From assembly GCA_051294905.1 (NCBI GenBank), contig CM119386.1, forward strand, positions 6,758,001-6,822,000: DNA of 64,000 bases. The letters are read 5' to 3'. Numbering within the stretch: position 1 is the stretch's first letter; each line of letters opens with the position of its first letter. The notes below the pieces were generated by a model. That model was not told the origin of the DNA. It made no database searches and saw only the letters and a program-made list of their open reading frames with translations. The DNA is from Botryllus schlosseri. Taxonomy: Eukaryota. The position numbers and the translations under genes are program-made. Positions 7,976-62,981 of this stretch are shown piece by piece.

Positions 7976-8205
7976 ATGGAAGAAAGAACCACTACCACAA
8001 CTACTACTTCCACAACGACAACTTCACAAGTAGCAATTGGCGTGAACGTTGGATTCTTAACGACTCCTTTAGGGATTCTTATCATCGTGGAATTCGTTCT
8101 AACGTTGCTCGCATGGACCTTGCTGGTTAGCGTGTGGTGGTACCCTTCTTACTCAGCACTTGGCTTTGCTGCGTTCGGATTCATCTTCAGCTGGTTGATT
8201 ACATT
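7976..8205 (+). CDS. MARVEL-domain 4-TM protein, copy 1, coding exon 1 (gene join 7976-8205, 9348-9497, 11270-11402; 170 aa)
   Basis: ATG at 7976 in aaagATGG context; donor TT|gtgagt at 8206. Spliced product: MEERTTTTTTTSTTTTSQVAIGVNVGFLTTPLGILIIVEFVLTLLAWTLLVSVWWYPSYSALGFAAFGFIFSWLITLGFFVVFVFGLHASTFANLPWGTIQIFCNLIFALLCFISACCVAAWAKHGSKLQASCAFGFIATVFYAISVLLSFRKAYGRFPWQNVANQSANT*. It has four hydrophobic helices and MARVEL-like motifs (FLxTPxGILxIVE; FGLH...LPW; A(S/A)xFGFxATxxY). Exon lengths 230+150+133=513 nt stay in frame across two phase-2 introns. Confidence 0.92.
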
Positions 8206-8877
8206 GTGAGTACAGCCATTCACGATCAGGAATATTCCAAAGTTCAGGCTAGTTATATCCGTCTAATGTAGGAGTCGTCAACACCTGACACGCGTGCCTC
8301 TTGTGGTACGCGAGTTGATTTTTTTCCTGACGCGCGGAACTATTTTGAGCGTGCCGCGAGCGTACGATGGTCACAATCACCCTTTCAAATAAGCCCCACT
8401 TTTTCGAAGAAATGAAGCATACTTTAATAACTAATATCAGGACTCCCGTGACGCCCACAAGTCTTACCTTTTATCTGCTAGGCTTTGTTTGCTGTGGCTG
8501 ATATCCATTGTTTGAGAGAATTGGTTTTAAAACCACGACTGAACGTGGTCTGTGGTTACCAATAAACAGTGTGTTTATATTTCCCTGATTTCATCGATTT
8601 CTCTTCGGCTTCTTGACATTTAATCACAAGGTCGAAATCAAGGCGGTTAAGCTTACCTATGGGTTTCAGCTTTTAGATATGCGGTTGGTATGATTCCTCG
8701 CTCAATTGATTCGAAAATTGTGGCAAAATTCAAAATGTTGTTCACGATATGTTCTCAGGAGGCGCTAAATTGCCGACTTATTTCACCCTTGTCAGAGCAT
8801 GAAAACGCAACAGTAATTCGCATGATTTATTCGCCGCCATTGGCGTTGATAATACGCTGGAATTTCGCTACGTAAAC

Positions 8878-9270
8878 CAAAAGGTGGTCAAAGTAGTCAA
8901 GACTCAAGAACATTACTTAAGTAGAAGAAGTACCCACACAGAATTCTACTCAAGTACAAGCGGGAGTGGTGTTTTACGAAGCAGCCCAAAACTACTTCAA
9001 GCAGAGCTGTATGGATTTGTGTTGCTTTACATCCCATGCCGTAGATATATCTTTTCAACAGTTCAGTATTCGATCGCATCATGTCATACAAATGATACCT
9101 CTTCCACAGAACAGTAGTTCTATATACCTTTGTTTCACCTAAGAACGCCTTTCAGAAATTGGATGGCATTGCGCCCTCCTTTATTATAAGGCTCGTAACC
9201 CTTATTACTTCTATTTTATGTAACCTACTCTTGAAAATCGTTACTTGTGATTGAGTGGTGAACACTGGCG
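8878..9270. mobile_element. Old decayed AGTAGA-family hAT relic in MARVEL intron 1
   Basis: Begins ggtggtcaaagtagtcaag...actcaag; orthologous relics at 40638-41008 and 60391-60780, so it predates the duplications. Confidence 0.7.
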
Positions 9271-9347
9271 AAATTAACATATACTTGAGTATCGTCAACA
9301 ATTTTGACCGAGCCTGGTCCAATCATTGCACATTGATAATTTCACAG

Positions 9348-9497
9348 GGGATTCTTCGTAGTTTTTGTATTCGGTCTCCATGCAAGCACGTTCGCGAATC
9401 TGCCCTGGGGAACTATTCAAATATTCTGTAATCTGATATTTGCATTGCTGTGCTTTATTTCTGCGTGTTGCGTTGCCGCATGGGCGAAGCATGGCAG
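9348..9497 (+). CDS. MARVEL copy 1, coding exon 2
   Basis: Acceptor tttcacag| and donor GCAG|gtaaag; 150 nt, phase 2-2; encodes (L)GFFVVFVFGLHASTFANLPWGTIQIFCNLIFALLCFISACCVAAWAKHG(S). The ORF track misses it. Confidence 0.92.
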
Positions 9498-9834
9498 GTA
9501 AAGTAATACTCACACTGTATATCCATTTCCTATAATAGTAAACGTCCCACCCCGATATGTATGTACTAATTGTACTTGTGCTTTAGTGCTTACTTCATAC
9601 TGTGTGGTTTCGCAACGTCCCGATCACTAGCCGATATGCTATTGTCATTATAGATAACTATTCCACGGATAGACGCGAAACAGATGATAGGCCTATATGG
9701 TTTCAGTGACCTGATCACATTATAATATTAATTTTCGGGATAAGTGTGACAGCGGCTGTACGTTCATTTTGAACAGGTTTGAATAAATTTTGCGCTCGTA
9801 TCGTCAGCAATGTAGTGTACGAATATAAATGCCA

Positions 9835-10160
9835 CTGTGATTGTGGTTACGTGGAAGAACGTCGAACCGTTTGCAGAAACGCATAAACCATGCATGACCC
9901 TATATTTATCAGAAAACGTGCATCACGCTCGGTGAAAAGCTCACCCTTAACTCATCCGCTCAAGCTTGAGGCTGAACGTTCAGAGGCCATAAAATCTGCC
10001 ATTGGCAAACATGTGTTGGATAATCCCGCTTTTGCCGAAAACTATCGAGGCGACAGATTTCGCGTCATCTGGAGCCCTGGAGGGGCCCTCACACTTTCAT
10101 CTGTCAGCCCAAGTTATGTCTACAAAAGGAGTTTGTGTACCACCTTAAAATAGTACATTG
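9835..10160 (+). mobile_element. Penelope-like element fragment (GIY-YIG endonuclease C-terminus) in MARVEL-1 intron 2
   Basis: Frameshifted CDCGYV...HDP.FIRK...SAIGKHVLDNPAFAENYRGDRFRVI...PKLCLQKEFVYHLKI; absent from copies 2 and 3. Confidence 0.7.
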
Positions 10161-10636
10161 AACGCTCTCATATTTGAGATTGCATTTCATGCTGGTGACG
10201 TCATATTTTATGATACGATTGCTGATATGCAATGTTCTTCCAAATTCTCTACTAATTGCTGACGATTACCGCTGACTCAATTGGATCGTCAGCTAAAACA
10301 TTACCATATCAGGTTACAAAGCAACCAGAAATTGCAAGCCAAATCTGATTGCCCACCGTAAAGTCCCATGTTTCGCATCTATTCATAGGTTAGTTACCTA
10401 TCGTGATATTCAACTATGGTCCAGGAGGGGCCTACGATATTCAATATCAATATTGAATATCGTAGGCCCCGGTCCAGGTTTATTCCACTTAGTACAAATA
10501 GTACATACCATTGCTATTTGTGGCGGCTAACCCCATTGTACAGGATTAGCAGACCTATTCTTGATATTAGAACAATGCTATACTGTCTCATTTCAAGTAA
10601 TGCATACAAACAGTATGTATAGTTCATTCCATTATG

Positions 10637-10941
10637 TAGGGTTACCATACGTCCTCCTTTAGGAGGATTTGTCCCCCTTTTTCGGGTTTTTGAAAATGTC
10701 CTCCTTTTGAGATTTTGTCCTCTTTTTTAGGAATTTTGGTCAAATTTGTAGCAAAATTCGACTGAGATGCCGTAAATCAGCACCGTAGCACTGTGGTTTC
10801 TTTTTTTTTAGTCCGACTTTTTTTAACCGACTACGAAGTGGTAGAAAATTTTCACTTTTTCAGGATTTTTCACCGGTATTCTGTGGTTGAAAATTTTGAA
10901 AGAGTGTCCTCTTTTCCCGATTCCAAAATATGGTAACCCTA
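10637..10941. mobile_element. TAGGGTTACCATA-family MITE in MARVEL-1 intron 2
   Basis: TIR tagggttaccata...tatggtaacccta; cattatg is duplicated on both sides. Confidence 0.85.
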
Positions 10942-11269
10942 CATTATGTAAATTGAAGACTTGCCATACTGGCATAGCAACAAGACAGAGATAATTGTAC
11001 GTACATCCAACATTCCCATACCCACTTTCGGGCTAACAATGTGTTGTTTGTTTTAACCCAATTCAGGCCTTTGAAAGTCAATTGCGATCCTACTACTATC
11101 GGTTCTCTCAAATGTGCAGTGTGCGCTGGACACATCATGTGAAACCAGTAAAATATCATGCCCCATTAATAAGTGCAGTTTCTAGTTGGGTGAAGAAGCC
11201 ACTTCAACTACCTGTGGAATGTTACAATCGATGAGATATTACTTGAATTGTACACATTTTGTTTTCTAG

Positions 11270-11402
11270 TAAGTTGCAAGCAAGCTGTGCGTTCGGATTC
11301 ATCGCGACTGTCTTCTACGCGATTAGCGTTCTTTTGTCTTTCCGAAAAGCGTATGGACGATTTCCTTGGCAGAATGTTGCCAACCAGTCTGCCAACACAT
11401 GA
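11270..11402 (+). CDS. MARVEL copy 1, coding exon 3
   Basis: Acceptor ttttgttttctag|; encodes (S)KLQASCAFGFIATVFYAISVLLSFRKAYGRFPWQNVANQSANT, TGA at 11400-11402; AATAAA at 11566-11571. Confidence 0.9.
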
Positions 11403-12072
11403 ACGAAACATGGTTAATTTCGAGGTAGCGTCTAGAACTCTAGATCATGGATTTGAGGTTCATTGTTGAAAGCCTCTAACTGACTTTATCGTACCAAAAT
11501 AAGCTATCGGACAGCACGTACGCTTTTTCTACTGGATTAACGCGGCATTCTTGGTTTGCTACCTAAATAAAGCTACTGAATACTACTGACTATGCGGAAT
11601 ATCACGTTCATAATGATCTTGTTATATAAAAACTCGACTGCGATATGTACGCATTTGATTGAGCCTGTGTTCGTCAACCGATCCGACCGTATTGAGCTAT
11701 TTTAGAGAAGCAGGAAATAGGTTATATTGCCGCGGATTGTGTTAGTGGCGGTAGCAGGATGTTAACTCGAGTCGAGCGTGGTAATTAGTATTGTATGAAT
11801 GTTATTGGGAATTTCCCAGTCAACCCGAAATTTCCTGGATGGTATCTCTGATATGGTACATAAAATGTTCAGAGTTGGAGCACCGAGGAAAGGTAACGCA
11901 CATTGACTTGATTACTTGCATAGCGTAGATAAGATCACGGATCTCATATTTCAAGGGGTCCATGAAAAGGAAATAAAAATCTTAGGGTCGAGTAATGAAA
12001 TTTGGATTTGCGGCGAATCTATGGATTGATCAACCCTGCGATTAGCTAGTAGATGATATCCAGTGATTAGGA

Positions 12073-13115
12073 CAGTGGTTCTCAACCTTATTGACCTCGC
12101 GGTAACCCTTTGAAAACGAAAAATAGTTCGTGGCACACTTGCACAGTGGTTCTCAACTTTTATCATATGTTTATCGTTCCTTCTTGATTACAACAAGTAG
12201 GGCGTATTCAGACGGAAGTAATGAGGGTCACTTTGATTTAATGACGATTTACGACGTCACGGAAACTTCAGGCTGCGCTTATAGTTACACATTCACAAGA
12301 TTCGCATGACAATACACTCTTTCCACTACCGCATTGTCGATGTAATTAGCCATCGTATCGAAGAGGCCAAGCACGATCGCCACTATCAAATACAAAGACG
12401 TAGTGGCGCATACATAGCCTAGCCTATATCGATGCCGAACGCATTTCTACTCAGATCGTGTAGCACGCGTTAGGATATAGCCATACCGCAAAAGTTCTAC
12501 GGACAGCCACCCGCAGTTCAATTATAGTTCCAACAAATCGGGATAACAACCTCAGCGGCGGGAAATTTCTTAACTGATATAATTTGATCCACTTTACTCC
12601 TAAATTATCAAATCCGTCGCCTGTAACATAACGTTGCCCTCCAAGCCTGCATTTTAACGGCAGTGCCGGCACGTTACCTAACGATCGCAATGTGGATGGT
12701 TAATGGCTGTGTTTGTAATTTGAATTTGTAAACGTGAACATCACTTCCAAAGGAATTCATTTCTCGCTGGTTATTAGGAAAAACATGAGGATTTGAAAAC
12801 TGCATTGTCAACAAGCGACACCATGTCTGCTCTTCTGATAAACGTATTGTGAAAAACTGAAAACAGTCTTCATCGCACGCAATATGTCGGGTAAAGCGAA
12901 TTGGCGGGGTGTATTGGTTGTGGGCATAACATCGATTTTGATCTGTCAAACGTGCAAACTTCACATCGAGCCCGACTTAGATATTATTGATCGTTTGCTG
13001 AAGACTAGAATTATTTTGCACATAATTTCAAAATTTCGAAGAAATCTAACGCGGCACCCTTGTGTTTCGTAAATAGCACACTAGTGTTTCGCGGCACACC
13101 GGTTGAGAACCACTG
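12073..13115. mobile_element. hAT (Charlie-like) non-autonomous element
   Basis: TIR cagtggttctcaacc...ggttgagaaccactg; TSD gattagga/gatcagga; empty site at about 63620; left end internally duplicated at about 12144. Confidence 0.88.
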
Positions 13116-16745: not shown

Positions 16746-16899
16746 CACTAGATGGATCCTCAAAGGTGTCGCGAGCAAAGTTCAAACGTTATGAACAGAC
16801 GGAGCTCAAAAGACAGTCCTTGTACTAAGGCAGCGCTAGCTACCCGACCAGGTTACGTCACGACAATACTAAGATTCGAAGAGAACAAGACGCGGCGGG

Positions 16900-22022: not shown

Positions 22023-23308
22023 CAGAGGTGGTCAGTAACGAAGTACTTCTACTTTTTCGAAGTACTCAAGTAGTTATCCTCTACTTCTGGTACTTACTCA
22101 AGTAGATCTGATTTTCGCTACTTCTACTTCTACTTCGTAATATTTTGTGATCTACTTACTTACTTCTCGCTATTTTCAGTTTGTCAAGTAGAAGTAGTTC
22201 AATCTTTCAATCAGGAAGACAGCCTGAGGAATTTCGGGGCTGTTTTCGCGGAGTATCAACATTTAATTTTCATAAGAATTGAGTAAAGCCCAGAATTTTC
22301 GTCGCGCTTCGCGCGCGGTGACTACGGAGTTACCAGTATGATTTCACGGAAGTATCGATGAATATAATTTAGATAGCGGGTTGGCGTGGTTCCGTTCGCA
22401 CAGGGATATCTAGAATTAGATATCTATATATCCCTGCGTTCACACCACATTGTCCCCCCTCGCCCATATGAAATAATTCATCACGGTATATATGGATCAT
22501 CAAAACGTTTGAAACTGATGTTTCGCAATGTAGCATTTACTTATCATATCGTAATCTAGCATGTCCATGGCGCGTCCTAACCTGACAAAGTGGACTCTAA
22601 CATTTTTTTGTTAGTTTTAGAGCTGATTTAGCATACCACCTTTGAAACTTTCTGGACCAAAGGCATGAAAAACGTTTTCCGCTTTTAGAAGTAGTATTCA
22701 TGTTTCATTTTCAATTTCCAGTACCATATACTTTGAGTTATAATCAAAATCAGTTATTTTGTCTGGATAACATACATGATAAAGTATTAAAGCAAGTGTA
22801 CTAATGCCTTTGATTTCCGGAAATATAGCTACACAATATCGCATTGTTACGGTCCACCACATTTTTTATTATCGTTTACTAATCGCGCAAAGTGTTAACA
22901 CCGTATCCTATACAACTTCTCCGTATTGCTCTTCGACTAAACTACGGACCTTATAATATGGGGGATGGCGCCATACCATGCTATTTTCTAAAACGTGCTG
23001 TTCGAGAAAACAGAGGATAAGTATCGCATTTCCATATCAATCGTATCATTCCTTCCGATGATGTGAAGGGATGCTTATGCTATCGAAAATTGGATACCTG
23101 CTTCTATGCATAAATATGAATCAAGCTCGTCAACTTTCGCAACTACTTACTTACTTGAGTACTTTTAAAGTCAGTAAATTCTACTTCTACTTCAAGTAGT
23201 TTTAGGGTGCTTACGGAAGAAGTACTTCTACTTGTACTTGAGTAGATTTTTTCGTCGCTACTTCTACTTCTACTTGAGTAGCTTTCTTGGCTACTTTGAC
23301 CACCTCTG
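22023..23308. mobile_element. AGTAGA-family hAT element, about 1.3-kb form
   Basis: TIR cagaggtggtca...tgaccacctctg; perfect 8-bp TSD gtatttat. Confidence 0.92.
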
Positions 23309-40004: not shown

Positions 40005-41033
40005 GTGAGTACAGCCATTCACGACCAGGAATATTCGAAAGTTCAGGCTATAGTTATATCCATAGTGTAGGGGTATCCAACACCCGACAGTACGCGAGCT
40101 GATTTTTACATGACGTGCGAATTGATTTTGAGTGTACCGGGGACTACGATCGTAAGTCCAGAGCCCCTGATACGTCACAATCACCCTTTCTAATAGGCAT
40201 CCCCTTTTCGAAGAAATAAACATAAATTTAATAGCGGAAATCATGACTGTTGCTGCTATCCATTGTTTGATAGAATTGGTTGTAAAACCACGACTGAACG
40301 TGGTATTCGGTTACTGATAAACAATGTGTTTATATGTACTTGATTTTATCGATTTTTCCTTGGCTTCTTGACATTCAATCACTAGGTTGAAATCAAGGGG
40401 GTTAAGCTTTCTTACGGGTTTCAGCTTTCAGATATGCGGTTGGTATGATTACTCGCTCATTTGAGTCGGACATTGTGACAAAATTCAAAATGCTTCTCAC
40501 TATGTTCTTATGTAGGCGCTAAATTGCCGACTTATTTGAGCCATTTCAGAGCATGTAAACGCAATGTTCAGTAATTCACATGATGTATTCACCGCCATAT
40601 AGCGTTAGTAATACCTTAGAATTTTGCTACGTTAACTCAGAGGTGGTAAAAGTGGTGAAGACTCCAGAACGCTACCACAGTAGAAGAAGTAGCTACGCAG
40701 AATTTTACTCAAGTACGAGCCGGAGTAGTGTTTTCCGAAGCAGTCCAATACTACTTCAGATCCAAATGGGCTTTACATCCCGTATGCGGGAGATATATCT
40801 TTCAATCGTGTGATGCAAATGATACCTCCACCATAGAATAGTAGTAGGCCTACTCTATCTTTGTTTCACCTCAGTACTTCTTTTAGAAATTGAGCGGCTA
40901 TACACCCTCCTTCATTATAAGGATCGTTACCCTCATAACTTCTACCTTCATGTAACCTATAGTTATAAAAATCGCTACTTCTTGTAATTGAGTGGCGAAC
41001 ACTGGCAACATTAACATAGGCTATACGTGATTA

Positions 41034-42959: not shown

Positions 42960-43025
42960 TTATTGTTAACGATTTCCACTGCATCAGTTTCAATAATTGC
43001 ACAATGCACATTGATAATTTCACAG

Positions 43026-43175
43026 GGGATTCTTCATAGTTTTTGTATTCGGTCTACATGAAAGCACGTTCGCGAACCTGCCCTGGGGAATGATTCAAAT
43101 TTTCTGTAACCTGGTATTTGCATTGCTGTGCTTTATTTCTGCGTGTTGTGTTGCCGCCAACGCGAGCGGGTGGAG
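43026..43175 (+). CDS. MARVEL copy 2, coding exon 2
   Basis: Acceptor tttcacag| and donor GGAG|gtaaag; 150 nt, open frame, many synonymous differences from copy 1. Confidence 0.9.
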
Positions 43176-44088
43176 GTAAAGTAATACTCAAACTTCTATA
43201 TTCCTTCCCTCTAAATAGGATGCGACCCACCCGAGATGCATTTACTTGGCGACGTTAGCGTGTGCTTTAGTCCCTACTTACACTGTGTGGCATAGCAATT
43301 AGCAACGTTCTGATCGTTTTCTGGTGTGATGTTATAGTTGTAGATAACTATCTCACGGATAGATGCGAAACTGATGTAAAAGGTTGGTTACGGTGACCTG
43401 ACCAGTGACCACATTATCATTTTTATTTTTGGGATAAGTGTGCCAGCAGCTGTGCTTTCATTTTGAACCAGCTTTAATAAATATTGCGCTCGGGTCGCCA
43501 GCTATAAGATTACCATATCTGTTTGCGAAGCAACCAGAAATTACAAGCCAAATTCTGTTGCCCAACCGTGCAGTCCCACCTTTCGCATCTATTCATATGT
43601 TAGTTACATATATATAGTGATATTCAACTATGGGCCAAGTTTATTACAAATAGTGTATGTCATTGCTATTTGTGGCGACTAACCCCAGTGTACAGGAGTA
43701 TCAGGCCTCTGTTTGATTTTAGAACAGTGTTATGCTAAGTCATTTCAAGTAATGCATACAAACAGTGCGTAGGCCTATACGTTACTCCATTGCGTAAATT
43801 GTAGACTTGATATACTGGCATATCAACAAGAAATAATGGTTCATCGCCATACCGACTTGCGTGCCTGCAATGTGTTTTTGTTATAACCCATTTCAGGCCT
43901 TTGAAAGCCTATTGCGATCCTGTGCTCTAACAGACATAGTGTGGGTTGGGCACGAGATGTTAAAAATGTAAAATATCATGCCTATTGATAAGTGCAGTCT
44001 CTAGTTGGGTGACGAAGCCACTTCAACTACCTGTGGAATGATACTATCGATGAGATATTACTTGGATTGTATGCATTTTGTTTTCTAG

Positions 44089-44251
44089 TAACTTACAAGC
44101 AAGCTGTGCGTTCGGATTCTTCGCAACTATCTTCTACGCCATTAGCGTGCTTGTGTCGTTCCGCAAAGTGTATGGGCGGTTATTTGTCAGAATGGTGCCC
44201 ACCAGCCAGCCAACACATGAACGAAACAGGTTCATTGTTCAAAGCCTCTAA
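44089..44251 (+). CDS. MARVEL copy 2, coding exon 3 (tail frameshifted after TM4)
   Basis: Acceptor ttttgttttctag|. TM4 is intact. A 1-nt deletion near 44180-44187 relative to copies 1 and 3 bypasses the ancestral TGA (44218-44220), so the frame ends at TAA 44249-44251. ATTAAA at 44339-44344. Confidence 0.85.
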
Positions 44252-44674
44252 CTGACTTTATCGTACCAAAATAACCTATTCGAACAGCACTTATGCTGCT
44301 TTTCTACTGGATTTACGCGGTATTTCGCTTGCTACCAAATTAAAGCTATATTATAAAGTATATATATATATATAATACTACACTGACTATGGGAAATCTC
44401 ACGTTCCTATTAATCTCTTTATATAGAGAAGCAGGAAATATGGTATATTGCCGCGGATTGTTTTAGTGGCGGCTCCAGGATGTTCAGTCGAGCGTGGTAA
44501 AAAGTATTGTAGTTATATAGCTCGCTGGTGGTGTGCCTGGGGTTATTATGGGCGGGGTGGGGCACTAACGCGAAACTAGGTGTGGTGAACTAACACTACA
44601 AAGATAAGAATCGCTCGCATGGTGACCCGTTCAGGTAGGTGCTGTGGTGAACTAACATTAAAACCGGAGGTGGC

Positions 44675-46370
44675 CAGAGGTGGTCAAAGTAGCCAAGAAA
44701 ACTACTCAAGTACGAGTAGAGTATTACTTTCAAAAGCAACCTAAAACTACTTGAAGTAGAAGTGGTATTGACTGACGTTAAATCTACTCAAGTAAGGAAG
44801 TACTTGTGAAAACGATCGTAATTCGTTCGCATGGACTGTCAACAGCTGCAAATTGAGCTATGGGAAAGTACCTGAGCGTGATTCACTTTGATGCATCCAG
44901 GAGGTATCAATCTTCGACAGCATGAGCAATGCGCATTCGTCAGCATCATGGGATGAAAATTATACTATTGATATGGAAATGCGATGCTAATTCTCTGTTT
45001 ACTCGAACAGCCCGTTTTAGAAAATATCATGGTATGGCGCCCTCCCCCATACTATAAGGCCCGTAGTTAAGTCGGAGAGCAATACGAAGAAGTTATATCG
45101 GATACGGTGTTAACGATTTGCGCGATTAGTAAACGTAAATAAAAAACGTGGTGGTTCGTAAAAATGCCACATTGTGTACTTTATTTCCGGAAAATAAAGA
45201 CTTTACTACACTTGCTTCTATAGGCCTACTTCAACCTGTATGTTCTCCAGACAAAGCAACTGAAACTAATTATTGTCCAAAGTAGGATACTGGGAATTGA
45301 AAGAGAGATATAAACACTATTTCTAAAAGGCGGAAAATATATTTCATGACTGTAGTCCTGACAGTTTCGAAGGTGGTCTGCTAAACATATGTCTGAAGCT
45401 AAAAAAGTCAAGAGCTCACTTTTCCAGACTGGACTGCTAGATTACGATAGACTACGATTACGATTACGATATGATAAATGCTAGACTGTGAAACATCAGC
45501 TTCAAACGTTATGATGATGATCCATATTTACTGCCATGAAATATCTCATACCGGTGACAATGCGATCTGAACGGAACCACGCAAACCGCTATATGGCGCT
45601 GTCTAATTTATATTCATCGATACTTCCGTGAAATCATATTGATCGCTCCATATCATTACTGCGCGAAGCACGGCGAAAATTATGGGCTTTACTCTACTTT
45701 TAAGAAAACTATATGTTGACACTATGTGAAAACAGCCCCAAAATTCTCCAGGCTAGTTATCTGATTGGAGGATTGAACTACTTCTACTTGAAAAACTGAA
45801 AATAGCGTAAAGCAAGTAGGTAGATCACAAAATATTACGAAGTAGAGGTAGCGGGAAATTTGATTTACTTGAGTAAGTATCCAAGTAGTGGAAAACTTGT
45901 TACTGCAGTAATCTGCAGTGCATAATAATTATCAACAATCGATTAGGCGCCGCAATGGTTGTTCTCTTATGTTGATTGAGCGCCGCCTCAAGTTTATTCG
46001 GCTTTGTCGTTGGTGCTGCGTGTTGATACGTTGAGTTGGTACGCTGTTAGTTGTTATTCGTGGTATCTGTCTGTGGTCACTAGTTACTGACATGTGTTTC
46101 TATTGCTCAGGCTTGTCTCCATAAACGCAGGCGACCACCACAATTTTAAAACCTAGTCTGACGACATACCTTATTTGCTGCAATTGGACATCCATTTGTT
46201 ACGTCGTTCGTTTAAATATATTATTTCAACCTTCTTCAACGGATCATCGTTTGTCGGGATCGGTCGTGTGATTTGAGTTCAAATAAAAGTGGTTTCAATA
46301 CCTCTCCTCAAGAGCAGTTACAGTACTTCAAAAAAGTAGAAGTAGGCTACTTCGTTGCTGACCACCTCTG
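44675..46370. mobile_element. AGTAGA-family hAT element containing a probable solo LTR
   Basis: TIR cagaggtggtca...tgaccacctctg; TSD gaggtggc/ggggtggc. Confidence 0.88.
45898..46322 (+). mobile_element. Probable solo LTR
   Basis: Insertion into the hAT terminus with tgttac...gttaca ends and AATAAA about 35 nt before the end; TSD not clear. Confidence 0.55.
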
Positions 46371-47227: not shown

Positions 47228-47551
47228 CAGAGGTGCTCAGTAACGAATTACTTCTACTTTTTTGAAGTACTCAAGTAGTTTTCCTCTACTTCTGGTACTT
47301 ACTCAAGTAGATATTTTTTCGCTACTCCTAGCTCCATTTGCAGCTTTGGACAGTCCATGCAAACGAATTACAATCGTTTTCTTATCTACTTACTTACTTG
47401 AGTAGATTTAAAGTCAGTCAATTCGACTTCTACTTCAAGTAGTTTCAGGTTGCTTATGTAAGAAGTACTTCTACTCGAACTTGAGTAATTATTTTCGTCG
47501 CCACTTCTACTTCCACTTGAGTAGCTTTCCTGACTACTTAGACCTCCTCTG
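47228..47551. mobile_element. Short internal-deletion derivative of the AGTAGA family
   Basis: Both terminus types are joined with almost no interior. Confidence 0.8.
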
Positions 47552-48049
47552 CTAGCATGGCCCACTTATATGCTTTTTGTAAGACACCGCTTATGCTCAC
47601 AAAGAGGTTATACTGGAACAAACACACCTGTCTTTACAGTCTTTCTTTCGAGCAATAAGCAACGCCATCGAAGCCCTTATCCACTCTTTATGGACAACTG
47701 CATAAAACAATGATCGGGAAATCGGGAAATTTAAGACCCTTAGCTTCTGGTGACCTACTACTACACAGTTCCTTCCCGACGACATTGAGTAGTAGGCCTC
47801 GTAATATAATCTGATAACTGGCGATAATAGTGTTATTAGTTCACAGACCTAGCCGTTAAGAACGCAGTTCAAATAGAGATGATCTGCTTCAGATATTCAC
47901 GGGGATTGAAAGAGGACAGTTTCAATCAAACTAGGTGAGCAAAATTATTAAAGAGCTTCTTGGAGGTACAGAATTTCAGTATTCAAAAATCCTTAACTGG
48001 CCATGAACTTGTGGCCGGCCACGATGGATCAGTGTGGCCGCCCATGAAA

Positions 48050-49731: not shown

Positions 49732-49753
49732 CCCTATACTCATTAGGTCCATT

Positions 49754-51117: not shown

Positions 51118-51299
51118 GGTCCATTAACTTACCTACAGTACACAGCCAGTATCAATCCAACAAGTTTCATTGCTGATCACTGTACCTTTTCCAGAAGTAC
51201 ACAAAGAGACAAGTATGTGGAATGAGTAATAATGAACATGAGAACATTGTTACTTTGTCCATCTCACTGAACATTCCCAAATTCTTCAGAGTTACAAAT

Positions 51300-52900
51300 G
51301 ATAACATGACAACCTCAAGCCTGCATGTTTGAATTGTAGAATTGCATATTTCCCGTACATCGCAGCTCGATAGTTAGTGAATCCAAGTTAAGGAACGATC
51401 AAGCTCATTTGCACTGTACAGTGTGCATTTGCACTTATGCAGTCGGGTCATGCGAAATCTTGGTCATCTTTAGCCAAACACGCCTATTGATCAACGTTTC
51501 ATCGCATCCGGATTGCGCTTACAGAACTGGGAACTAAATTGCGTGACTCAATAAACCAACTACAGTAAATGCCCCATTGAATGTATAGCCGTCGTATACG
51601 TGTTTCAAGTCGATGCTTTATATTACTGCCCTTTTGTACTTTTGTATAGCCTGCTCTGAAAACCATACTTGAACGTCATTTGAAGAGCTTCTTGGAAGTA
51701 CAGAATTTCTATATACAATGGAATAGTATATTCATATTGAAATGAACCCGATAATTGATATACAAATTTCTTTCCATTTCTCTACTAGTTGCTGACGATT
51801 ACGCCTGACGAGTGTCAGCCGAAAATGCCCGGGTTCATTTCAATACGAATGTACTTGTCAGTTGTACTTCATTGCGTGGTTTATTGTGGTTTGAGAAGAA
51901 ATCATGTTACTGGGTATTTCAATTCAGCTTTTAGTATTGCTTTTCTTGTCGGGTATTCGAGCACCACGTTTGAATTCATAGCCATATAGCAATGGCCTTT
52001 AAAGTAAGTTTCAAAGCGTATCTTTATTGGATCATAATGCAATTATGCCAGTTTCACGATATCCAAAATAGTTTCTAATATCTGGACCATTACTATTTCG
52101 TATCGCTTTGTGACCAGACCATTGTAATAATATTAGATTACTACTGTATGGATATGCCGCTCCATGAATATTCATAGCAATGTTTACATCATTATCGAAG
52201 CTACGATACGGTCAGCCGAGGTCATGAGGATTCAACCGTGGGAATACAGTATTGTCAGTATCGAAATCATATTTTTGCTGAAAAAAAAACGCGTATAATT
52301 TTGTTACTCGAAAAAATCGACTTGCTACGTTAATCGAATTATAGCACAGTTGATACTCTACTCGGAATTGTCTCGTCGATTCCTTATTCCCAGTTCTACC
52401 TGGTGGCTATTAGTGATAATACGGTGTAGCTTTTATCTACCCAGGATCCTGAAAGTTTCTTTAACAGTTATATTGATCGGGAAACCAAGAGACCTGAAAT
52501 CTTTCAACTCCTTCACAACATTGCAGTTTCATTGCAACGATATGAACAGAAATATATCAAAATTCCAATCCTACATCTGAAGGAGAGCGAAGCTAAATAA
52601 TGTTAACCGCCTCGCCCCTGACCAGTGATCAGTAGTGGAATTGACACACCGAAAAACTCTATACTTGGAGGGGGAGAGTGTCAGAAAGGTCACACCTATT
52701 AATAAGTTACTCTTAAAGTTAGCATCAGTGTTACCAAGATCACATTAGCCACAATATTATTTTATTCGATGGAAATTACTATATATTTGCTTCGAAAATG
52801 AATTAGCTAATCTTGCTTCCTAATCCCGTAGGACTTGCTGTCATTATATCACCAACCATGTAGTGAGCACGATCGCCATTTGGAGGGTTCACAAAAAACA
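51300..52900 (-). pseudogene. Decayed CTL/FN3-like gene, unit 3 partial copy (Ig part absent)
   Basis: SCSLHGW*YNDSKSYGI near 52880-52820; 177-nt phase 1-1 exon 52576-52400; FN3-like SSNLILLQWSGHKAIRNSNGPDIRNYFGYRETG...LLYGYEFK at about 52235-51900. Confidence 0.45.
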
Positions 52901-53261
52901 GCCACGCCCTCGTAAGTGCAAGGCGTGAAAGAGTGTCGGAAGTACTTCGACGACGTTTACGGTTGTATGAAGTGATGTGTTAAGAGGTGATTCCGTGTCC
53001 GCCCGTCTCCGCAAATGTTCGATTCTGATATTGTTACCTCAGTGTCATGTATGCTGTGTATCTATTTGTGGGAGTCACGAGGTCATCCGACGTAACCTTT
53101 CATGCTGTAGTATGCCATCAAATCTAAACATACACTGACACAGAAAGTGATTGCTCTGTATATCAACATTGTCAGTTGATGTCAGTCTAAAAGACCGCAA
53201 CTGCGCGTCTTTCGGCATCCTGCTATCTGTTCATTAAATCGTATTGTGTCTTATCGCATTG

Positions 53262-53660: not shown

Positions 53661-53663
53661 TTA

Positions 53664-56368
53664 CTCTGGTCTACACGATTCTCACGAATCAGACATTATT
53701 TTTGCTCTATCACATCACGTTTTTGAGATAATATATATGTTGAATATTTCTACTTTTTCGAGGTAATCAAGTAGATTTTGGCTACTTGCAATACTTACTG
53801 AAGTGGTAATGTTTTACAACTACTTCAACATCTACCTGAAAAGTATTCTTGGATTAGCTAATTACGTTTGCAATTTGGTTTTTGTAAATAAGAAAGTGGT
53901 TCAGGGATAATATTGCGTCACTATCATGAGTTAAATTCCATAAGAAACGTGTGAAATGGCCTCTGAATCACAGTAACTGAATATATTTTTTCGAAGATTC
54001 TACCGATGGGTGGTGTCATTAGAGTCATTTTGCGTTAGATGCAACGATACATCTTGCGATTTCGTATTTAGCAACCTCCGGCCAAGTATTGAAAGTATGA
54101 GACCACCCTCTCCCGACCTAATATACTTATAAATTTACTGACATTTAGTAATTCTCTTACATTTTATCTTCTACGTGAAATAGTTTTCACATGTCTTAGA
54201 AATTAATGTAATTCTACTTTTAATTGACTAGAAATGACTAGCAACGCCGATCGCTTCGACCAACTCTAGTTCATGGCAAAATATTACGGCAAATAAGAAA
54301 CTGCCAAAAATATAAAGCTTTTGTATTTAGAACTGACGTTTAATCATACAAAATACTAACAAAAAGCCGCGAAACCATTTAAAAACATCACGAGAAAGTA
54401 ACGAATGCTTATCTCTAGCTCTGTTCCAGCAGAACACATGGTATTTGACAGAGGTGGTCAAAGTCGTCAAGAAAGCTACTCAAGTAGAAGTAGAAGTACT
54501 TCTTCCATAAGTCACCTAAGACTACTTCGAGTAGAAGTAGAATTGACTGACTTTAAATCTACTCAAGTAAGTAAGTCGTTTCGACAACAGTCTTAATTCG
54601 TTCGCATGGACTGTCAAAAGCTGCAAATTGAGCTATGCGGAAGGTGCAGAGAGCTTGATTCGTATTGATGCATCCCAGGAGGTATCAATTTTCGACAGAA
54701 TAAGCATTTTTTCGCATGATGGTGCGTAAATTATAATATTGATATATAAATGCGATACTAACCCTTTGTTCACTAGACGACCCCGTTTTAGAGAGTATCA
54801 TGGCATGTCGCCCTACCCCATATTATAAGGCCCCAAGTTTAGGATAAGAGCAATACGGAGAAGTTGTATCGGATACGGTTTCAACACTTTACGCAATCAA
54901 CATACATTAATTGAAAAATATTACGAAGTAGAAGTAGAGAAAATCAGATCTACTAGAGTAGGTGCCAGAAGTAGAAGAAAACTACTCGAGTACTTCCAAC
55001 AAGTAGAAGTACTTCGTTACTGACCACCTCTGTTATTTGATGTAGGTCACAGAATGTCCTACGTCGAGACGGATCGACTGTCCTAGAACCGATGCATATT
55101 TATTTCTATTGTGAAGTAACACGCACTTCAAGTTTCGTGTTGAGCTATTAGTAAGCAATCTCTATTCATTGGGTTGTCTATAATAGACAATGCAAAAGAA
55201 GCCCTTTAAATCATGGCAATAAACCCAAAGAAAAAGAGTTCAGAAACAGCTCTCCTCGATTCCGATAAGATGTGACAGTATATGGAAACTTGAGAAGAAG
55301 AATCAGCATGATGATAAATTCTAGTACAGGCGGAGATTAATGATGATAAATTCTTTCAAGTTATCATGATAAGCATTTTTTTTTTTCATTGGAAAAGAAG
55401 GCATCCTGTTCCTTTTAATGTTTCAAAACCAGCTTAAATGGCCACATATTTGGGTTATAGTGCCGGCAATGTCTATTGTTTGCAAACTTTTACGTTTTAC
55501 GAAAGAGCAGTGCGCTGTCACAAAATGCATTGACCGATTAAGTCTGCAGGACAGATGTATAAAGAAAGATAACGTATGGAACTAAACTGGATACGGAGCT
55601 ACTAATCGCAATCTTTACACGAAGAGTGGTATATAAAGATGATAACTGCTACCGACTAAAATGTTGCATCCAGATCCACATATATATTTATGGGTCGAAA
55701 AGAGGTCCTGATGGAAAGAAGATAGACAACCACTGGATTCAATTTCACCAAAACCTCGGTTATTCTGTTCTACAACAACCCAGTTTTCATCATTATAGAT
55801 GATTTCATTAACAATATTTGAACTGTTGTTGTTGTACGCTCACCGTAATGTCACTAACGTCAGCCGACATTTGATTAATTTATGAAAATGAGAAAAATAC
55901 ACACCGAAAAATTCTGAGGTGATAGAGAAATTCTTAGCACATAATCGTATTCAGAAACCTAATATAAACTAGAATCAATCATTACAATATTTAGGGCAAA
56001 TTTATTTTTTGAAATTTGTAGACTAGTGTAATTTTACGGGTCGAAAATAGCTTCTGATTGAACGATATAGCGAATCACTGGATCCAAGTTCCCCGAAAAC
56101 TAACTCATTCTGTACTTCAAAAACCCAGGTTTCATGATAGATGATTTGAATAACAATATTCGATCTGTTGCTGTTTTATGCTAACCGTGATGTAACTATC
56201 GAAAGCCGTAATTTGAATAATTTATGAAAATGAGAAAGATTCATACGGAAAAATCTGACGTGATAGAAAAATTCTGAGCACAGAATCGGATTCAGCAACC
56301 TTCAATTAGCCTACATCAAACATTAATTTTTTTGGCGCAAAAATTTACTCGGAATTTGTGGACCAGTG
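53664..56368. mobile_element. Chapaev3-like element, second copy of 23728-25676
   Basis: tta|ctctggtctacac...tgtggaccagtg|tta; collinear interior and duplicated right end; carries an extra hAT insertion. Confidence 0.7.
54449..55032. mobile_element. AGTAGA-family derivative inserted in the Chapaev3-like element
   Basis: TIR cagaggtggtca...tgaccacctctg; TSD gtatttga/ttatttga; empty site at about 24350. Confidence 0.88.
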
Positions 56369-57102
56369 TTATTGATTATATTGTCCTGCTCGCACAATTA
56401 CGACGATCGTGGTTACTAACCAAGCGCGGGATAGCGTAAGAGCACCTATCTGGCGATGTCAATCAATTGCAATATAGCGTCGTCTAGTTGCAGTGCATTT
56501 GCCGAGAATACACCTCGTCGATTTTTCCAACATGACAGCGGTCTTTGTGAACAGTACCGAGTATTCGAAACACGGGGACACTTGATATTTACATGCACGC
56601 GTTACCGCTCCTGAAGGGGATATCCGCTCAAAGCTTGTAACCTACAATATTTTTCGATAACTCTTGATTCTTCGTTGAGCAACCCATTGATAGACTCGAA
56701 TTATGACGGCCCCTTATGCAACCCACATCAATCATCCCTCAAAGTCTGGCGCGCCAAACCCTAGTTTCTGAGCACCTTACCCCATATCCACCCACCAATT
56801 CTGCTGAAAATAAATGCACATCAAAGCAATATTTTTTATGTACTTTAGAAGTTACAATATAGCTTGCGGGCTGTTGCTATTTGCAACCACACACTTATTG
56901 CTTTGTAGACAGGATTCCGAGTCGGCTCTCAGATTTTTCGGTTGTCCTTGAATCGACACCCTAGGTGAATCTAGTTCAATATAACTGGCCTAAATTAACA
57001 GTCCTAGGTCACAACAAATATGCGTATTATTATTATAAAATATTTATGAAAATATTTTGGATAGATTTTCCGAGTCACCGGGCTGTAGTATATAAACTAT
57101 AG

Positions 57103-59083
57103 CAGTGCTTTTCAACCTGTGTGACGGTTCGCACTTGTGCGAATGAAAAAAATTCCAGTGCGAATGACGAAGGTAGTGCGAATAGGGCGAATGGAAATCC
57201 GGATCAAGTGCGAATGACGAAGGTGGTGCGAATGGTGCGAATGAAAATCCGGATCAAGTGCGAATCAAAATCTTGGTTAATTGTCAACTTTTCTGACGTG
57301 AAATAATTCAAATAAACCTTATAGGAAATTTAAGGTCAGTGTAACTTCTGTTGTTGCGACAGAATTGTAAAACTTAATACGACGCACCACTAATCGGAGC
57401 TCTCACGAGCCATCGTGAATTAATATTCCCACACTGTAATTATTACGTAACCAAACGTTTGGTTGGGAAGCTGGTTTAGTGGCAGTATACAGATCTCTAC
57501 AATCTCCATAGTGCCAGACATACAGTATATCAGCCCGTCTGAGCTTGCGACAGGCTGGAAAAATATCTTCAAATTGACTTTCTACACTCTTTCGCTATAA
57601 ACATCTTCATATTTTCGTAATAACTGTTCGATAAGCGCGAGGCACGAGGATAGTAGTAAATACTATCATTAAAGACTCACATTTGCAAGTTACTGTAACA
57701 CAAATTTTGCCTCCTTCGCAGGTTATTAAAGTATGGACCGCGAAGGGTGTAATTTTGGGTCGATACCATGCTATTTGTCAATATGTAGCCTATGCAGTAT
57801 TTATAGAATTTATTGCAAAAAAGCCTGTGTTGGGTACTGTACCCAATGAGCGAGACACGCAGAAAATATAACTTTATCATGAGAACTCATGATAAGATTT
57901 CCAAATGTTTTTTCTGGAAAACATGGTCGAAGCCCGTTGGGATGAATTAATGTAGGGGCGAGTAACGAGCGAGCTCAGGCATATGAGATTCATTCATTTC
58001 GAGACTAACCCCTTCTGCGTCGGGACACGTGAAGACGTAAAGTTTTGGCGAACAAACCGCTGGCGGTGCCAAAACATAAGCTTAGACAAAACCTCAGTCT
58101 AAAAATGACCGATTCTGGATGCTCAAACCTTTCGAAATGGATTGGATATACGCTCCGTTGTCGGCACGGAATAGGCCCGTTCTTGCAATCTGAGTAGACT
58201 GTAGTACAACTGAGATACGCAGAGGAATTCAATTCACTCTAATTTGAAATCGCGTACGTCATACATGTTTTGTTGAGCTGTCATGGGTAGAATTGTGGTG
58301 TACGCGCTCTGTATGTCACACATGCCCGTAAAATCGTAGCATACAACTGTAATGTTAAAAATGAATTCATTTTCATGGGTGAGGCACGGGTCGCGAGATG
58401 CCACAAAAACTCAAATATTGGTGGTAGTCTAAAAGCAACTTTACCGTTATTAAACTGTTATGAATTCTCAAGTTAGTAATGAGTAAAACACACAGTATCG
58501 TGAGTTATTTGCTCTTCTCATAAACTCGCGAGACAGAAGTTGCAGCAACGTATTATAAGGTAGCGAGCTCTAATGTGCCCTGATCGTTTTGCATCTTCTG
58601 TTCCATAAAGACGTAAGGCAAACGCCTCAACACACACATGTGGGTATTCCATCCTTTCGACAAACTGGAGCGTCGCGGGACCTTTGTGTCAGCTCTCAAA
58701 AACGATTTCTGCCAGCACGCATTTTTATTCGCGAAAAATATACGCTGCTGTATTTTGGATAGAAGTGCAGAACAGATTATAAGACCTGGTCAATCAAGCA
58801 CTAGTAGACGTTCTTGTACAAATTCCCAACAACATTGTTTGGCCGAGAAGGGTTTTAGTGAAATAGTTGAAAGCAAAACGAGCGAAAAAAGTTACCTTTT
58901 TAACGAAACACCTAACAGCTTAAGCTACATAGTAGTCAATTTGTTGCACATCTGAACAAAATGTTGTCAAGTAGGCCTATCTTCATCGTCTTTATGCATA
59001 ACAATTTTCGATTACTTTGTGCGAATGAAATTCATTTTACAAAAAAAAGTGCGAATGGAGCTCAAAAAGGTTGAAAAGCACTG
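57103..59083. mobile_element. hAT-like element replacing the start of MARVEL-3
   Basis: 16-bp perfect TIR cagtgcttttcaacct...aggttgaaaagcactg; many subterminal gtgcgaatg motifs; no TSD, and about 60 nt of the gene are missing at the junction. Confidence 0.85.
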
Positions 59084-59839
59084 AACGGCCAATTCACGAG
59101 TATCAATTGGCATCAACGTCGGATTCTTAACGACTTCTTCTGGGATTCTTATCATCATGGAATTCGTTCCAACGTTGCTTGCGTGGACCCTGCTCGTTAC
59201 CGCGGCTCCCGCAGGGTGGTGCGCTTATGTACCAGTACTCTGCTTCGCTGCGTTCGGATTCATCTTCAGCTGGTTGATAACATTGTGAGTACAGCCATTC
59301 CCGATCAGGAATATCCTTAAGTTCAGGCTATTGTTATATCCATCTAGTGTAGGGGTCGTCAACACCTGACACGCGTGCTTCTTGTGGTACGCGAGTTAAA
59401 TTTTTTCATGACGTGCGGAATGATTTTGAGCGTACCGGGGCCTACGATCGTAAGCCTCGAGCGTACGATATGTCACAATCAACCTTTCAAATAGTCACCA
59501 CTTTTTCGAAGAAATGAAACATCATTTTGGAACGAAAATCATAGCTCCCGAGACGCCTACGTGTCTACCCATTATCTAGGCTCTGTTAGCCGTTGCTGAT
59601 ATCCATTGTTTGAGCGAATTGGTTATAAGACCACGGCTGAACGTGGTATATGCGATTACTAATAAACGATGTGCTTAATTGATTCGTAAATTGTGACAAA
59701 ATTCAAAATGTTGCTCACGATATGTTCTCAGGGAGACGCTATATATTGCTGACTTATTTGACTATTTCCAGAGCACGAAAACGCAATAGTAATTCTCTAA
59801 TTCACATGACGTATTCACCGCCATTGGCGTTGATAATAC

Positions 59840-60360
59840 TATAGAAATTAAACATGAAACGGCAACGATCGATTTTGCAGCTTCGTTCCGCTTCGCTGAG
59901 GCTGGAGTGGAGAATTGTTTTGCGTAAGCGACTGTAGGATTTCTGGCAATCCAAAAGTTATCTTCCAGAGCGCAGAAATTACTGAATCTGGTCTTGATCG
60001 AAACCTATTGCCGCATTGATTCAAAAAATATGAATGAAAATATAGTCACGCTTCAGTCATTGACGAAAAACCACCCTCAACATCTGAAATGTGCATTGTT
60101 CAGAACAATCGGGTAACGCGACCTAATGACCATAACAATGACCCGTTGCGACTCTCCAATTGTTCGAACAATGCTGATATTCCAGACTTGGAGGACGGAT
60201 TCTAGGTGGATCAGTGCCTGATCATATTTTAATTTATATTTTCGGAATTGGTGCAACAGTAGCTTTCGATCAAGACCAGATTCAGTAATTTCTGCCCTCG
60301 AAAAGATAGCTTTTGGATTGCCAGAAATCGGCCGTTACCCTGCCATGTTTAATTTCTATA
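59840..60360. mobile_element. Foldback-type MITE with long TIRs in MARVEL-3 intron 1
   Basis: Ends tatagaaattaaacatg...catgtttaatttctata plus a mirrored block ctggcaatccaaaag...gaaattactgaatctggtcttgatcgaaa; ataatac duplicated on both flanks. Confidence 0.8.
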
Positions 60361-61468
60361 ATAATACGGTAGAATTTTGCTACGTAAACCCTGACGTGGT
60401 CAAAGTAGTCAAGACTCAAGAACACTATTAAAGTAGAACAAGTAGCCACGCAGAATTCTACTCAAGTACAACCGGGAGCTATAGTGTTATTCGAAGCCAC
60501 CCAAAACTGCATCAAGTAAAGCTACGTGAATTTGCGTTGCTTTACATCCCTTGCCGGAGATACATTTTTTCAACAGTTTAGTATTCGACCGCATCATGTC
60601 ATACAAATGATAACTCTTCCATAGAACAGTAGTTCTATACCTTTGTTTCACCCAAGAACGTCTTTCAGAAATTGGATGGCATTGCGCCCTCCTATAGTTC
60701 GTAACCCTTATTACTTCTACTTTATGTAACCTACTCTTGAAAATCGTTAGTTCTTGTACTTGAGTGGTGAACACTGGTGACATTAACATATACTTGTATA
60801 TAGTCAACGATTTTGAACATCTGGTCCAATCACTGCACATTGATAATTTTACAGGGGATTCTTCGTAGTTTTTGTACTCGGTCTCCATGCAACCACGTTC
60901 GCGAATCTGCCATGGGGAACTATTCAAATATTCGGTAACCTCATATTTGCATTGCTGTGCTTCATTTCTACGTGTTGCGTTGCCGCATGGGCGAAGCATA
61001 GCAGGTAAAGTAATACTGCGTTGCCTCCGAGGCGAGATGGATGAGGTAGACTAATACTCAAACTTCTATATTCCTTTCCTATAATAGGATACGTCTCACC
61101 CGAGATGTATTTACTTGGCGTGTGCTTTATTAGTGCTTACTTTACACTGTGTGGCATAGAAATTAGCAACGTCCTGATCACTTTCTGGTGTGATGTTATA
61201 GCTAACTATCCCACGGGTGGATGCGAAACAGATGATAGATGGTTAGAGTGACCTGACCACATTATCATTTTTATTTTTGAGATAAGTGTGACAGCAGCTG
61301 CGTGCTTTCATGTTGAACAAGTTTTAAGAAATTTTGCGTTTGGTTCGCCAGCTATAAGATTACCACTTCTGTTTGTGAAGCAACCAGAAATTGCGAGCTT
61401 AATCCGGTTGCTTAACCGTGCAATCCCATATTCCGCTGCATCAACTCATAGGTTAGTTACCTATATAG

Positions 61469-61909
61469 TAGGCTTACCATACGTCCTCTTTTAAGAGGAT
61501 TTGTCCTCTGTTTTGGCTTTTTTGAAAGTGTCCTCGGAGGACGCCCTTTTGTCCTCTTTTTTGAGATTTTGTCCTCTTTTTTGAAAATTTAGGCAGATTT
61601 AGAGCAAATTGCGAGTGATATGCCGCATATTAGCACAGAAGTGAAGCTCCGGCGGGTGTTTCGGAGTTAAAAACGGTGATTCTAGCTCTGAGCGAAAAGA
61701 TGACCTTTTTTTTTTAGTCATCCACCTGGCAAAGTGGAGTAAAAAACGTTATTTTGAGCTCTGAGCAGAAGTGATGACCTTTTTTTTTTAGTCAACCGAT
61801 CGCAAAGTGGGAAAAATTAACCGGTATTTGAGAATTTTACTCGGTTTTGCAAGTTGAAAATTTCTGAAAAAGTGTCCTCTTTTATGATTTCCAAAATATG
61901 GTAAGCCTG
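61469..61909. mobile_element. TAGGGTTACCATA-family MITE in MARVEL-3 intron 2
   Basis: Ends taggcttaccata...tatggtaagcctg; TSD ctatatag/ctatgtag. Confidence 0.88.
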
Positions 61910-62981
61910 CTATGTAGTGATATTCAACTATGGTCCAAGTCTATTGCACTTGGTTAGTACAAATAGTCATAGTGTTTGTCATTGCTATTTGTGGCGGCGA
62001 ACCCCAGTGTACAGGATCAGTAGGCCAATGTTTGATATTAGAATAGTGTTATACTGTGTCATTTTAAGTAGGCTAATGCATACAAACAGTACGTTTAGTT
62101 TATTAAATTATGTAAATTGTAGACTTGAAATTCTGGCATATCAACAAGAAATAGATAATTGTTCACCCCCATACCGACTTTCGCTCTAACAATGTGTTGC
62201 TCGTTCTAACCCAGTTCAGGCCTTTGAAAGCGTAATGCGATCCTACTATGTGTTCTTACAGGCATAGTGTGGGCTGGACACGACAAAATGTAAAACGAGA
62301 AAATATCATGCCCAATTAACAAGTGCTGTCTCTAGTTGGGTGACGAGACCACTTCAACTACCTGTGGAATGTTACTATCGATAAGATATTACTTGAATTG
62401 TACGCATTTTGTTTTTTAGTAAGTTGCAAGCGAGCTGTGCGTTCGGATTCTTCGCAACTGTCTTCTAAGCGATTAGCGCTCTTGTGTCGTTCCGAAAAGC
62501 GCATGGGCGGTTTCCTTGGCAGAATGTTGCCAACCAGCCAGCCAACACAAGAACAAAACATGGTTAATTTCGAGATAATGGACTTGTGTGATTCATTATT
62601 GAAAGCCTCTAACTGACTTTACCGTACCAAAAATACGTTATTCGGACAGCACTTATGCTGCTTTTCTACTGGATTTACGCGGTAATTTTGGTTTGCTACC
62701 AAAATAAAACTACTGCATATTATACTGACTATGTGGAATATCACGTTCGTAGTGATCTCTTTATATGCAACGTCGGCAGCGAGATGTATGCATTTGATTA
62801 GGCCTGTGCTCTGCAACCAATCCTACTGTATTCATCTATTTTAGAACAGCAGGAAATAGGATTATGTTAGTGGCGGTTTCAGAATGTTAAATCGAGTCGA
62901 GCGTGGTAATTAGTATTGTATGAATGTTATTGGGAATTTCCCAGTCGAACCGAAATTTCCTGAATGGTATCTATGATATCA

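Follow-up and report, generated by a model that had tools for sequence, protein, structure and literature searches.

Fast-changing, putatively outward-facing loops on a conserved scaffold in a young array of plasmolipin-like MARVEL genes of Botryllus schlosseri

The 64,000-nucleotide stretch of the Botryllus schlosseri genome considered here (assembly GCA_051294905.1, contig CM119386.1, positions 6,758,001 to 6,822,000 of the forward strand; hereafter the window, numbered from its first letter) contains three tandem copies of a gene for a MARVEL four-helix protein resembling plasmolipin. Between the first two copies, two short loops that are predicted to face outward have changed faster, and beyond chance, than the helices and cytoplasmic parts to which they are joined. 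The locus thus hints at selection on an exposed surface, while falling short of proof, and diversifying selection on the outer loops of the array is tentatively preferred here, at somewhat less than an even probability.

Self-comparison of the window delimits three segmental duplicates (approx. 7650-12080, 39450-44350 and 56800-63630), which are 76-88% identical with introns and flanks included, each with one three-exon MARVEL gene of approximately 170 residues on the forward strand. Copy 1 (7976-11402) has an intact reading frame of 170 residues. Its exon 1 (7976-8205) encodes, from the start codon, a poly-Thr N-terminal tail, the first transmembrane helix (TM1), loop 1 (SVWWYPSYSAL, 8129-8161) and the first part of TM2; exon 2 (9348-9497) the rest of TM2, the cytoplasmic loop, TM3 and the beginning of loop 2 (AWAKHG, in full AWAKHGSK); and exon 3 (11270-11402) the end of loop 2, TM4 and the tail FRKAYGRFPWQ..ANT, up to the stop codon. 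In copy 2, exon 1 (39775-40004), the region of which is 86% identical at the DNA level to positions 7648-8290 of copy 1, flanks included, carries loop 1 as SVEWYVREPSL (39928-39960), and exon 2 (43026-43175) opens loop 2 with ANASGW, so that the complete loop, ANASGWSN, bears an N-x-S sequon, as do the orthologs. Exon 3 of this copy (44089-44251) has a 1-nt deletion near 44181-44186, and the ensuing frameshift replaces the tail ...GRFPWQNVANQSANT, leading to a product of 180 residues.

Copy 3 (59085-62552) is a pseudogene that has lost its start codon and contains two in-frame stops. The exon-1 remnant (59085-59284), with a TGA at 59082-59084 and a proline in TM1, includes a loop 1 of 14 codons (TAAPAGWCAYVPVL, 59199-59240); the start-codon region has been replaced by approximately 2 kb (57059-59089), an insertion with no counterpart in copy 1, and a promoter-like homology block is displaced 2 kb upstream (56796-57058). 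Exon 2 (60855-61004) begins loop 2 with AWAKHS (AWAKHSSK in full) and lies inside a copy-1-like conversion tract; exon 3 (62420-62552) has an in-frame TAA in TM4 (62466-62468) and AGA in place of the terminal stop. As a consequence, the loop variants of copy 3 are not working variants. A first-pass annotation, made from the sequence alone, had described a tandem array with hypervariable loops on a nearly invariant scaffold: the three copies are there, but the array is small, with one copy dead and another frameshifted, and the description, though partly confirmed, is overstated.

The assignment of these genes to the MARVEL four-helix family, also proposed in the first-pass annotation, is borne out by the Pfam profile PF01284, along which the translations of exons 1, 2 and 3 align one after the other (profile positions 1-53, 56-98 and 115-135; 19.3, 17.3 and 15.1 bits, respectively). 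Each piece scores below the whole-protein cut-off of 32.8 bits; their colinear sum exceeds it and, therefore, places the genes in the family, the profile of which is also carried by the full-length orthologs P0002 and P0014-P0016. Searches were begun with exon 1 of copy 1 and continued with the orthologs thus found. The closest named protein in an exhaustive search with that exon is XP_039273728.1 of Styela clava, a protein of 172 residues with the same three-exon structure, which is called ‘plasmolipin-like’ by NCBI and ‘MARVEL domain-containing protein 1-like’ in UniRef. In the AlphaFold model of this ortholog (pTM 0.69; pLDDT 85-95 in the helices), the four helices span residues 33-53, 62-86, 99-123 and 129-157, and the short loops (residues 54-61 and 124-128) lie on the same side of the membrane; the variable stretches of the window genes coincide with these two loops. 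Among Swiss-Prot proteins, plasmolipin gives the best fold match to the model (TM score 0.74-0.80, 21-30% identity), followed by CMTM8, CMTM4 and MARVELD1 (0.70-0.78) and then MAL (0.64-0.68), while synaptogyrin and synaptophysin are the best matches among solved structures, a sequence search of which returned synaptophysin only, and weakly. In sequence, too, plasmolipin is the best match among vertebrate proteins, although a weak one (E=4e-4), with CMTM8 at a nearly equal score; given this near tie, and evidence of the best-hit kind, the genes are filed as plasmolipin-like rather than as PLLP itself. On these profile, sequence and fold matches, they are taken to be plasmolipin-like MARVEL four-helix proteins.

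MAL, occludin and synaptophysin have an established topology with cytoplasmic termini, and by analogy the termini of the window proteins are probably cytoplasmic and loops 1 and 2 would face outward or towards a lumen. The basic residues that follow TM4 (FRKAYGR) and, in loop 2, the N-x-S sequons of copy 2 and of the orthologs are consistent with this arrangement. The cytoplasmic N-terminal tail contains a run of threonines (7985-8024 in copy 1) that is kept in the three-exon members retaining a start codon (i.e. copies 1 and 2, P0001, P0002, P0014-P0017 and P0019), and this tail, together with the FRKAYGRFPWQ tail, marks the ascidian subfamily.

The contrast between loops and scaffold emerges from the comparison of copies 1 and 2. 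By the Nei-Gojobori method, the helices differ by 15 synonymous and five non-synonymous changes (dN 0.026, dS 0.31, dN/dS 0.08), confirming that their differences are mostly silent, and the stretches LTLLAWTLLV and FAAFGFIFSWLITL are indeed invariant between the two copies; all non-loop codons taken together give dN 0.039 and dS 0.33 (dN/dS 0.12), and the cytoplasmic non-helix parts a dN/dS of 0.33 by codon maximum likelihood (ML). In the two loops (22 codons), 26 of 66 bases differ (39%), as compared with 16.6% of 2389 aligned non-coding columns, and only 3% of non-coding windows of 33 bases reach 13 mismatches, the count found in each loop. In simulations, the base changes are significantly in excess of what either the intron rate (p<1e-5) or the synonymous rate of 27% (p approx. 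0.015-0.02) would give. The loop dN of 0.54 likewise lies above both the dS of the remaining codons (0.33) and the divergence of non-coding DNA (0.17). A self-written codon likelihood model with a single synonymous rate for the whole gene yields a loop omega of 2.7 (support interval approx. 1.3-6; p=0.007 against 1), with each loop alone pointing in the same direction (p=0.016 and 0.045). Under four definitions of the loops, omega ranges from 2.7 to 5.7 (p 0.007 to 0.0001), the highest value being that for the 13 codons delimited by the structural model (p=1e-4). An ML fit to the loops alone was discarded as degenerate, its parameters having run to their bounds; a compensated frameshift inside loop 1 was rejected by inspection, as no shifted register improves the match.

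Relatives of these genes provide the background to the change of the loops. A search of the 495-Mb genome found five family members, namely copies 1-3, a copy 4 and one remote paralog. Copy 4, with approximately 55% protein identity, is older and lies approximately 8 kb beyond the end of the window, at window-equivalent positions 72051-74105 (chromosome 6830051-6832105; loci L007/L010), with compact introns and with loops that read SVWWWSHWHSL and ASGSKRVENFR. The first of its exons with homology begins at a splice acceptor just after an in-frame TAA, which means that translation must start in an additional exon further upstream. The locus of S. clava has a single MARVEL gene in 22 kb, and exons of the gene downstream of it have their match in DNA located 7.7 kb downstream from copy 4; this shared neighbour identifies copy 4 as the positional ortholog and, therefore, copies 1-3 as a lineage-specific addition. 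The remote paralog, approximately 29-35% identical in exon 1, is found 200 kb downstream on the same chromosome (7026803-7027021; L008 6804-7022), with a possible second exon approximately 4 kb upstream of the match (L008 2525-2644). Searches with exon 1 and with P0017 found no further members from the same species; the P0019 contigs (L014/L015) share no DNA similarity with the window and hence belong to another species.

Full-length ortholog transcripts from other ascidians (P0014-P0017, n=4) extend the comparison. The loops are the most variable part across species also (loop 1 reads SIPWFHREGEL, SIPSFHNRGEL, SITWFHYRGEL, SISGFHYLSEL and SCCYILAPQL), with the motif S-I-x-W-F-H-x-x-G-E-L retained. 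Between S. clava and P0014, omega is 0.145 for the loops and 0.025 for the rest. With synonymous sites saturated between species and branch lengths at their bounds, these interspecies omegas are to be read as measures of relative constraint only. Within this limit, the alignments suggest that the loops of single-copy orthologs are under mild constraint (omega at most 0.15 for S. clava and P0014) and, since they are, free or accelerated loop change would be a feature of the young array. The first-pass annotation had named equally variable loops in single-copy orthologs as the observation that would speak for relaxed constraint alone, and this is not what the orthologs display. To judge from the same alignments, the loops of copy 2 (WYVRE; N-A-S) look ancestral and those of copy 1 derived.

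The family is expressed and correctly spliced. In RNA-like Logan runs, 0.12-0.18 of the sequence words of copy 1 are recovered, approximately its exonic share. When two raw RNA runs (X23 and X27) and two contig sets (X12 and X5) were mapped on 7700-11700 at 80% likeness, read depth over copy 1 was confined to the three exons and a 3' untranslated region reaching to approximately 11600, besides repeats in intron 2. The joint 8205 to 9348 (GT..AG) is spanned by 32 reads of X23 and 83 of X27, as well as by an X12 contig, and the joint 9497 to 11270 is present in X12 and X5 contigs; it is this exon-confined depth, along with the GT..AG joints, that establishes expression and splicing. At least one copy is, thus, expressed. 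None of the reads is identical to the reference copy 1: all have copy-2-like letters at 8050, 8070-8071, 11276, 11306 and 11334. Across loop 1 the read depth collapses. X23 has AAA at codon 59, in loop 1; X27, X12 and X5, i.e. three studies, share a haplotype in which one nucleotide is missing at 8153 and position 8158 is G; a loop-2 form one codon longer (TG at the exon 2/3 joint) is found in X23, X27 and X12, and a minor form, ..AKGNSHLQ (GNSH), in X27; and at least three distinct exon-1 sequences occur in X12. Loop diversity beyond the reference, therefore, exists. One X5 contig (record 12) joins 9048-9495 to 11268-11524, keeping 300 bases of intron 1 and lacking intron 2; its source is either RNA spliced only in part, in a run of unspecified kind, or DNA of a haplotype that lacks this second intron.

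The copies have also exchanged segments. When three-way informative sites are scored along the unit, in copy-1 coordinates, the closest pair is copies 1 and 2 over 7600-8200 (which contains exon 1), copies 1 and 3 over 8800-9600 (exon 2) and copies 2 and 3 over 9600-9800 (intron 2), and a shift of this kind is the mark of gene conversion or unequal exchange. A Blast block that pairs 8849-9510 with 60361-61017, the tract with exon 2 of copy 3, is 88% identical. At the exon 2 donor of copy 3 there is a 41-bp tandem duplication (60977-61058, forward strand), which sits exactly where copy-1-like sequence switches to copy-2-like; its second unit has its own GT and the orphan loop-2 remnant SEARWM (61026-61043), and aligns without gaps to copy 2 only, the flank behind it being copy-2-like. 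The duplication most likely marks a junction formed by recombination or conversion, at which a former loop-2 coding end was left. All peptides and positions quoted in the first-pass annotation, this orphan included, prove correct in the translations; its set of loop 2 variants, on the other hand, is less diverse than it appears, since copies 1 and 3 differ there by one residue only, as the result of the conversion of copy 3 exon 2 by copy-1-like sequence.

How the excess of loop change is to be explained is less clear. A close rival to diversifying selection, and a serious possibility that also stays below even probability, is that constraint has simply been relaxed, i.e. that the outer loops lost a partner after duplication and drift neutrally on a scaffold that is still needed, in copies that are decaying. 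Several observations weigh against diversifying selection, and the following are those that relaxed constraint would account for. On the loops' own synonymous sites, dN/dS is 0.86 (dN 0.54, dS 0.63; Nei-Gojobori, 22 codons), so that the predicted loop dN/dS above 1 is obtained with a synonymous rate shared by the whole gene and is not obtained without it; the number of residues changed (11 of 22) is compatible with the 7-11 expected under neutrality in simulations (p 0.06-0.55); one copy is dead and another damaged, copy 2 having lost the conserved C-terminal FPWQ..ANT tail, which is present in every ortholog found in the cross-species alignment; and the loops are the least constrained part of the orthologs already, at approximately 5-6 times the rest. 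Against relaxation alone stand the base divergence of the loops, higher than that of both introns and synonymous sites, the omega above 1 under all four loop definitions, and the strong constraint still acting on the helices and cytoplasmic parts of the very same copies.

Further reasons for caution concern sampling and expression. The rates come from 13-22 codons of essentially one informative gene pair; on the whole tree of eight sequences, with its saturated synonymous sites, the loop omega is 0.34 and that of the rest 0.06; only 0.01-0.03 of copy-2 words are found in RNA-like Logan runs, from which the reference sequence of this copy was not recovered; and the loop variants in RNA may be alleles, unassembled paralogs or the product of pooled animals.

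As the base excess is significant and the residue count is not, the signal lies in codons hit two or three times. Such codons are real, as first noted, and number eight of the 22. Repeated adaptive replacement, clustered multi-base mutation or micro-conversion from a diverged haplotype would each produce them; conversion among genes, like multi-base changes in clusters, can pass for selection. A different history, improbable on the whole, has also to be weighed, namely that the loops are older or foreign patches that escaped homogenization, or the outcome of complex multi-base or micro-conversion events, with no faster substitution at all. The clear mosaicism among the copies and the junction at the copy 3 exon 2 donor fit such a history, as do the multi-hit codons, the loop synonymous divergence, which is itself raised (0.63 vs 0.33, on few sites), and the likeness of copy 2 loops to those of orthologs (WYVRE vs WFHRE, besides the N-x-S sequon). 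However, the five family members of the genome include no donor for the loops of copy 1: those of copy 4 are as far away (dN 0.96), for which reason a recent conversion of copy 1 loops from copy 4 was rejected. Furthermore, patches kept amid homogenized flanks would themselves imply selection for diversity.

A role of the loops as a code for self/non-self or gamete recognition, with polymorphism of the allorecognition type, is very improbable: ascidians do possess such recognition systems, and several loop variants appear in RNA from different studies, but the surface is very small (13-19 residues) and the known ascidian recognition genes are, to our knowledge, all of other families.

To return to diversifying selection, it would operate in a young, lineage-specific tandem family that evolves by duplication, gene conversion and decay. 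Its products would be raft-type four-helix proteins in which the membrane core and cytoplasmic tails do conserved work, the helices, cytoplasmic loop and tails being held by strong purifying selection, so that the only exposed outer (or luminal) surface would be the two loops, of approximately eight and five residues (approx. 13-19 in all). After duplication, the loops may have been freed from the mild constraint seen in orthologs, to change from then on at the neutral rate or faster; the copies would exchange segments and then turn over, one now being dead and one damaged. Selection may have favoured altered outer surfaces, e.g. to escape docking of a virus or toxin on the loops; both the selective agent and the adaptive nature of the excess change are conjectured from the pattern of change. 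The small size of the variable surface makes the proposal easy to test by loop swaps. A wider proposal, in which this tunicate-specific plasmolipin-like family would be a fast-evolving, polymorphic surface marker with conversion-shuffled loops of 5-8 residues under diversifying selection, acting either as a recognition code or, in an arms race against a virus or toxin, as a docking site that varies, is put forward as a doubtful one.

The rest of the window is less informative. The duplicated unit reaches several kb upstream of each MARVEL gene (4105-7382, 32454-35654 and 51299-52976). A 126-residue open reading frame (ORF) upstream of the duplicated block (3126-3506) has no Pfam match, and Pfam scans of the large ORFs elsewhere in the window gave none either. 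Intron 1 of copy 2 has an insertion of approximately 2 kb (41018-43002) with no counterpart in copy 1. At least six copies of a short dispersed repeat (approximately 170-260 bases, 85-93% identity) are present, in both orientations (2161-2428, 23140-23308, 38756-39011, 44687-44866, 47329-47555 and 54469-54669). Dispersed repeats also occupy intron 2 of copy 1 (9710-11050), where depth is very high in all four runs, up to several thousand for contigs, and where internal joints and loose ends are numerous; these repeats have the look of a mobile-element family that is both abundant and transcribed.

The components of the locus, i.e. a MARVEL gene, tandem duplication, gene conversion and variable loops, are all of known kinds. 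Literature searches found no earlier account of MARVEL proteins with fast-evolving loops or of MARVEL arrays in ascidians and, if the wider proposal is true, conversion-shuffled loops under diversifying selection would be shown here for the first time in a MARVEL protein. Plasmolipin, MAL and occludin are usually viewed as conserved trafficking or junction proteins, and several of them are exploited by viruses or toxins via their tiny outer loops; as an example, MAL is needed for the binding of Clostridium perfringens epsilon toxin, and its small outer loops matter there. In an invertebrate closely related to vertebrates, a lineage-specific array that combines strongly conserved helices and over-diverged loops with gene conversion and dead copies would offer a compact natural example of how a receptor surface evolves; should the loops be no more than unconstrained, the example would be one of ordinary birth-and-death evolution. 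An endogenous mouse retrovirus uses plasmolipin itself as its entry receptor, and in shrimp a plasmolipin is among the candidates for the receptor of yellow head virus (PMC8682038); this weakens the initial argument that such a pattern is not expected of MAL or plasmolipin genes. With these precedents from plasmolipin and MAL, receptor escape becomes the most natural selective reading.

In comparison with the known members of the family, the window genes share with PLLP a length of approximately 170-180 residues, four helices, short loops and the best fold match, but are only 21-30% identical to it, have the poly-Thr N-terminal tail and FRKAYGRFPWQ..ANT tail, present in all ascidian members of the family that were recovered, and form a tandem array of recent origin, with fast-changing loops and copies in decay, a situation undescribed for PLLP. 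CMTM8, CMTM4 and MARVELD1 come next in fold, and rat CMTM8 is a weak sequence match; the window genes, however, lack the chemokine-like region. MAL belongs to the same fold class (TM score 0.64-0.68, as above) and is the more distant relative.

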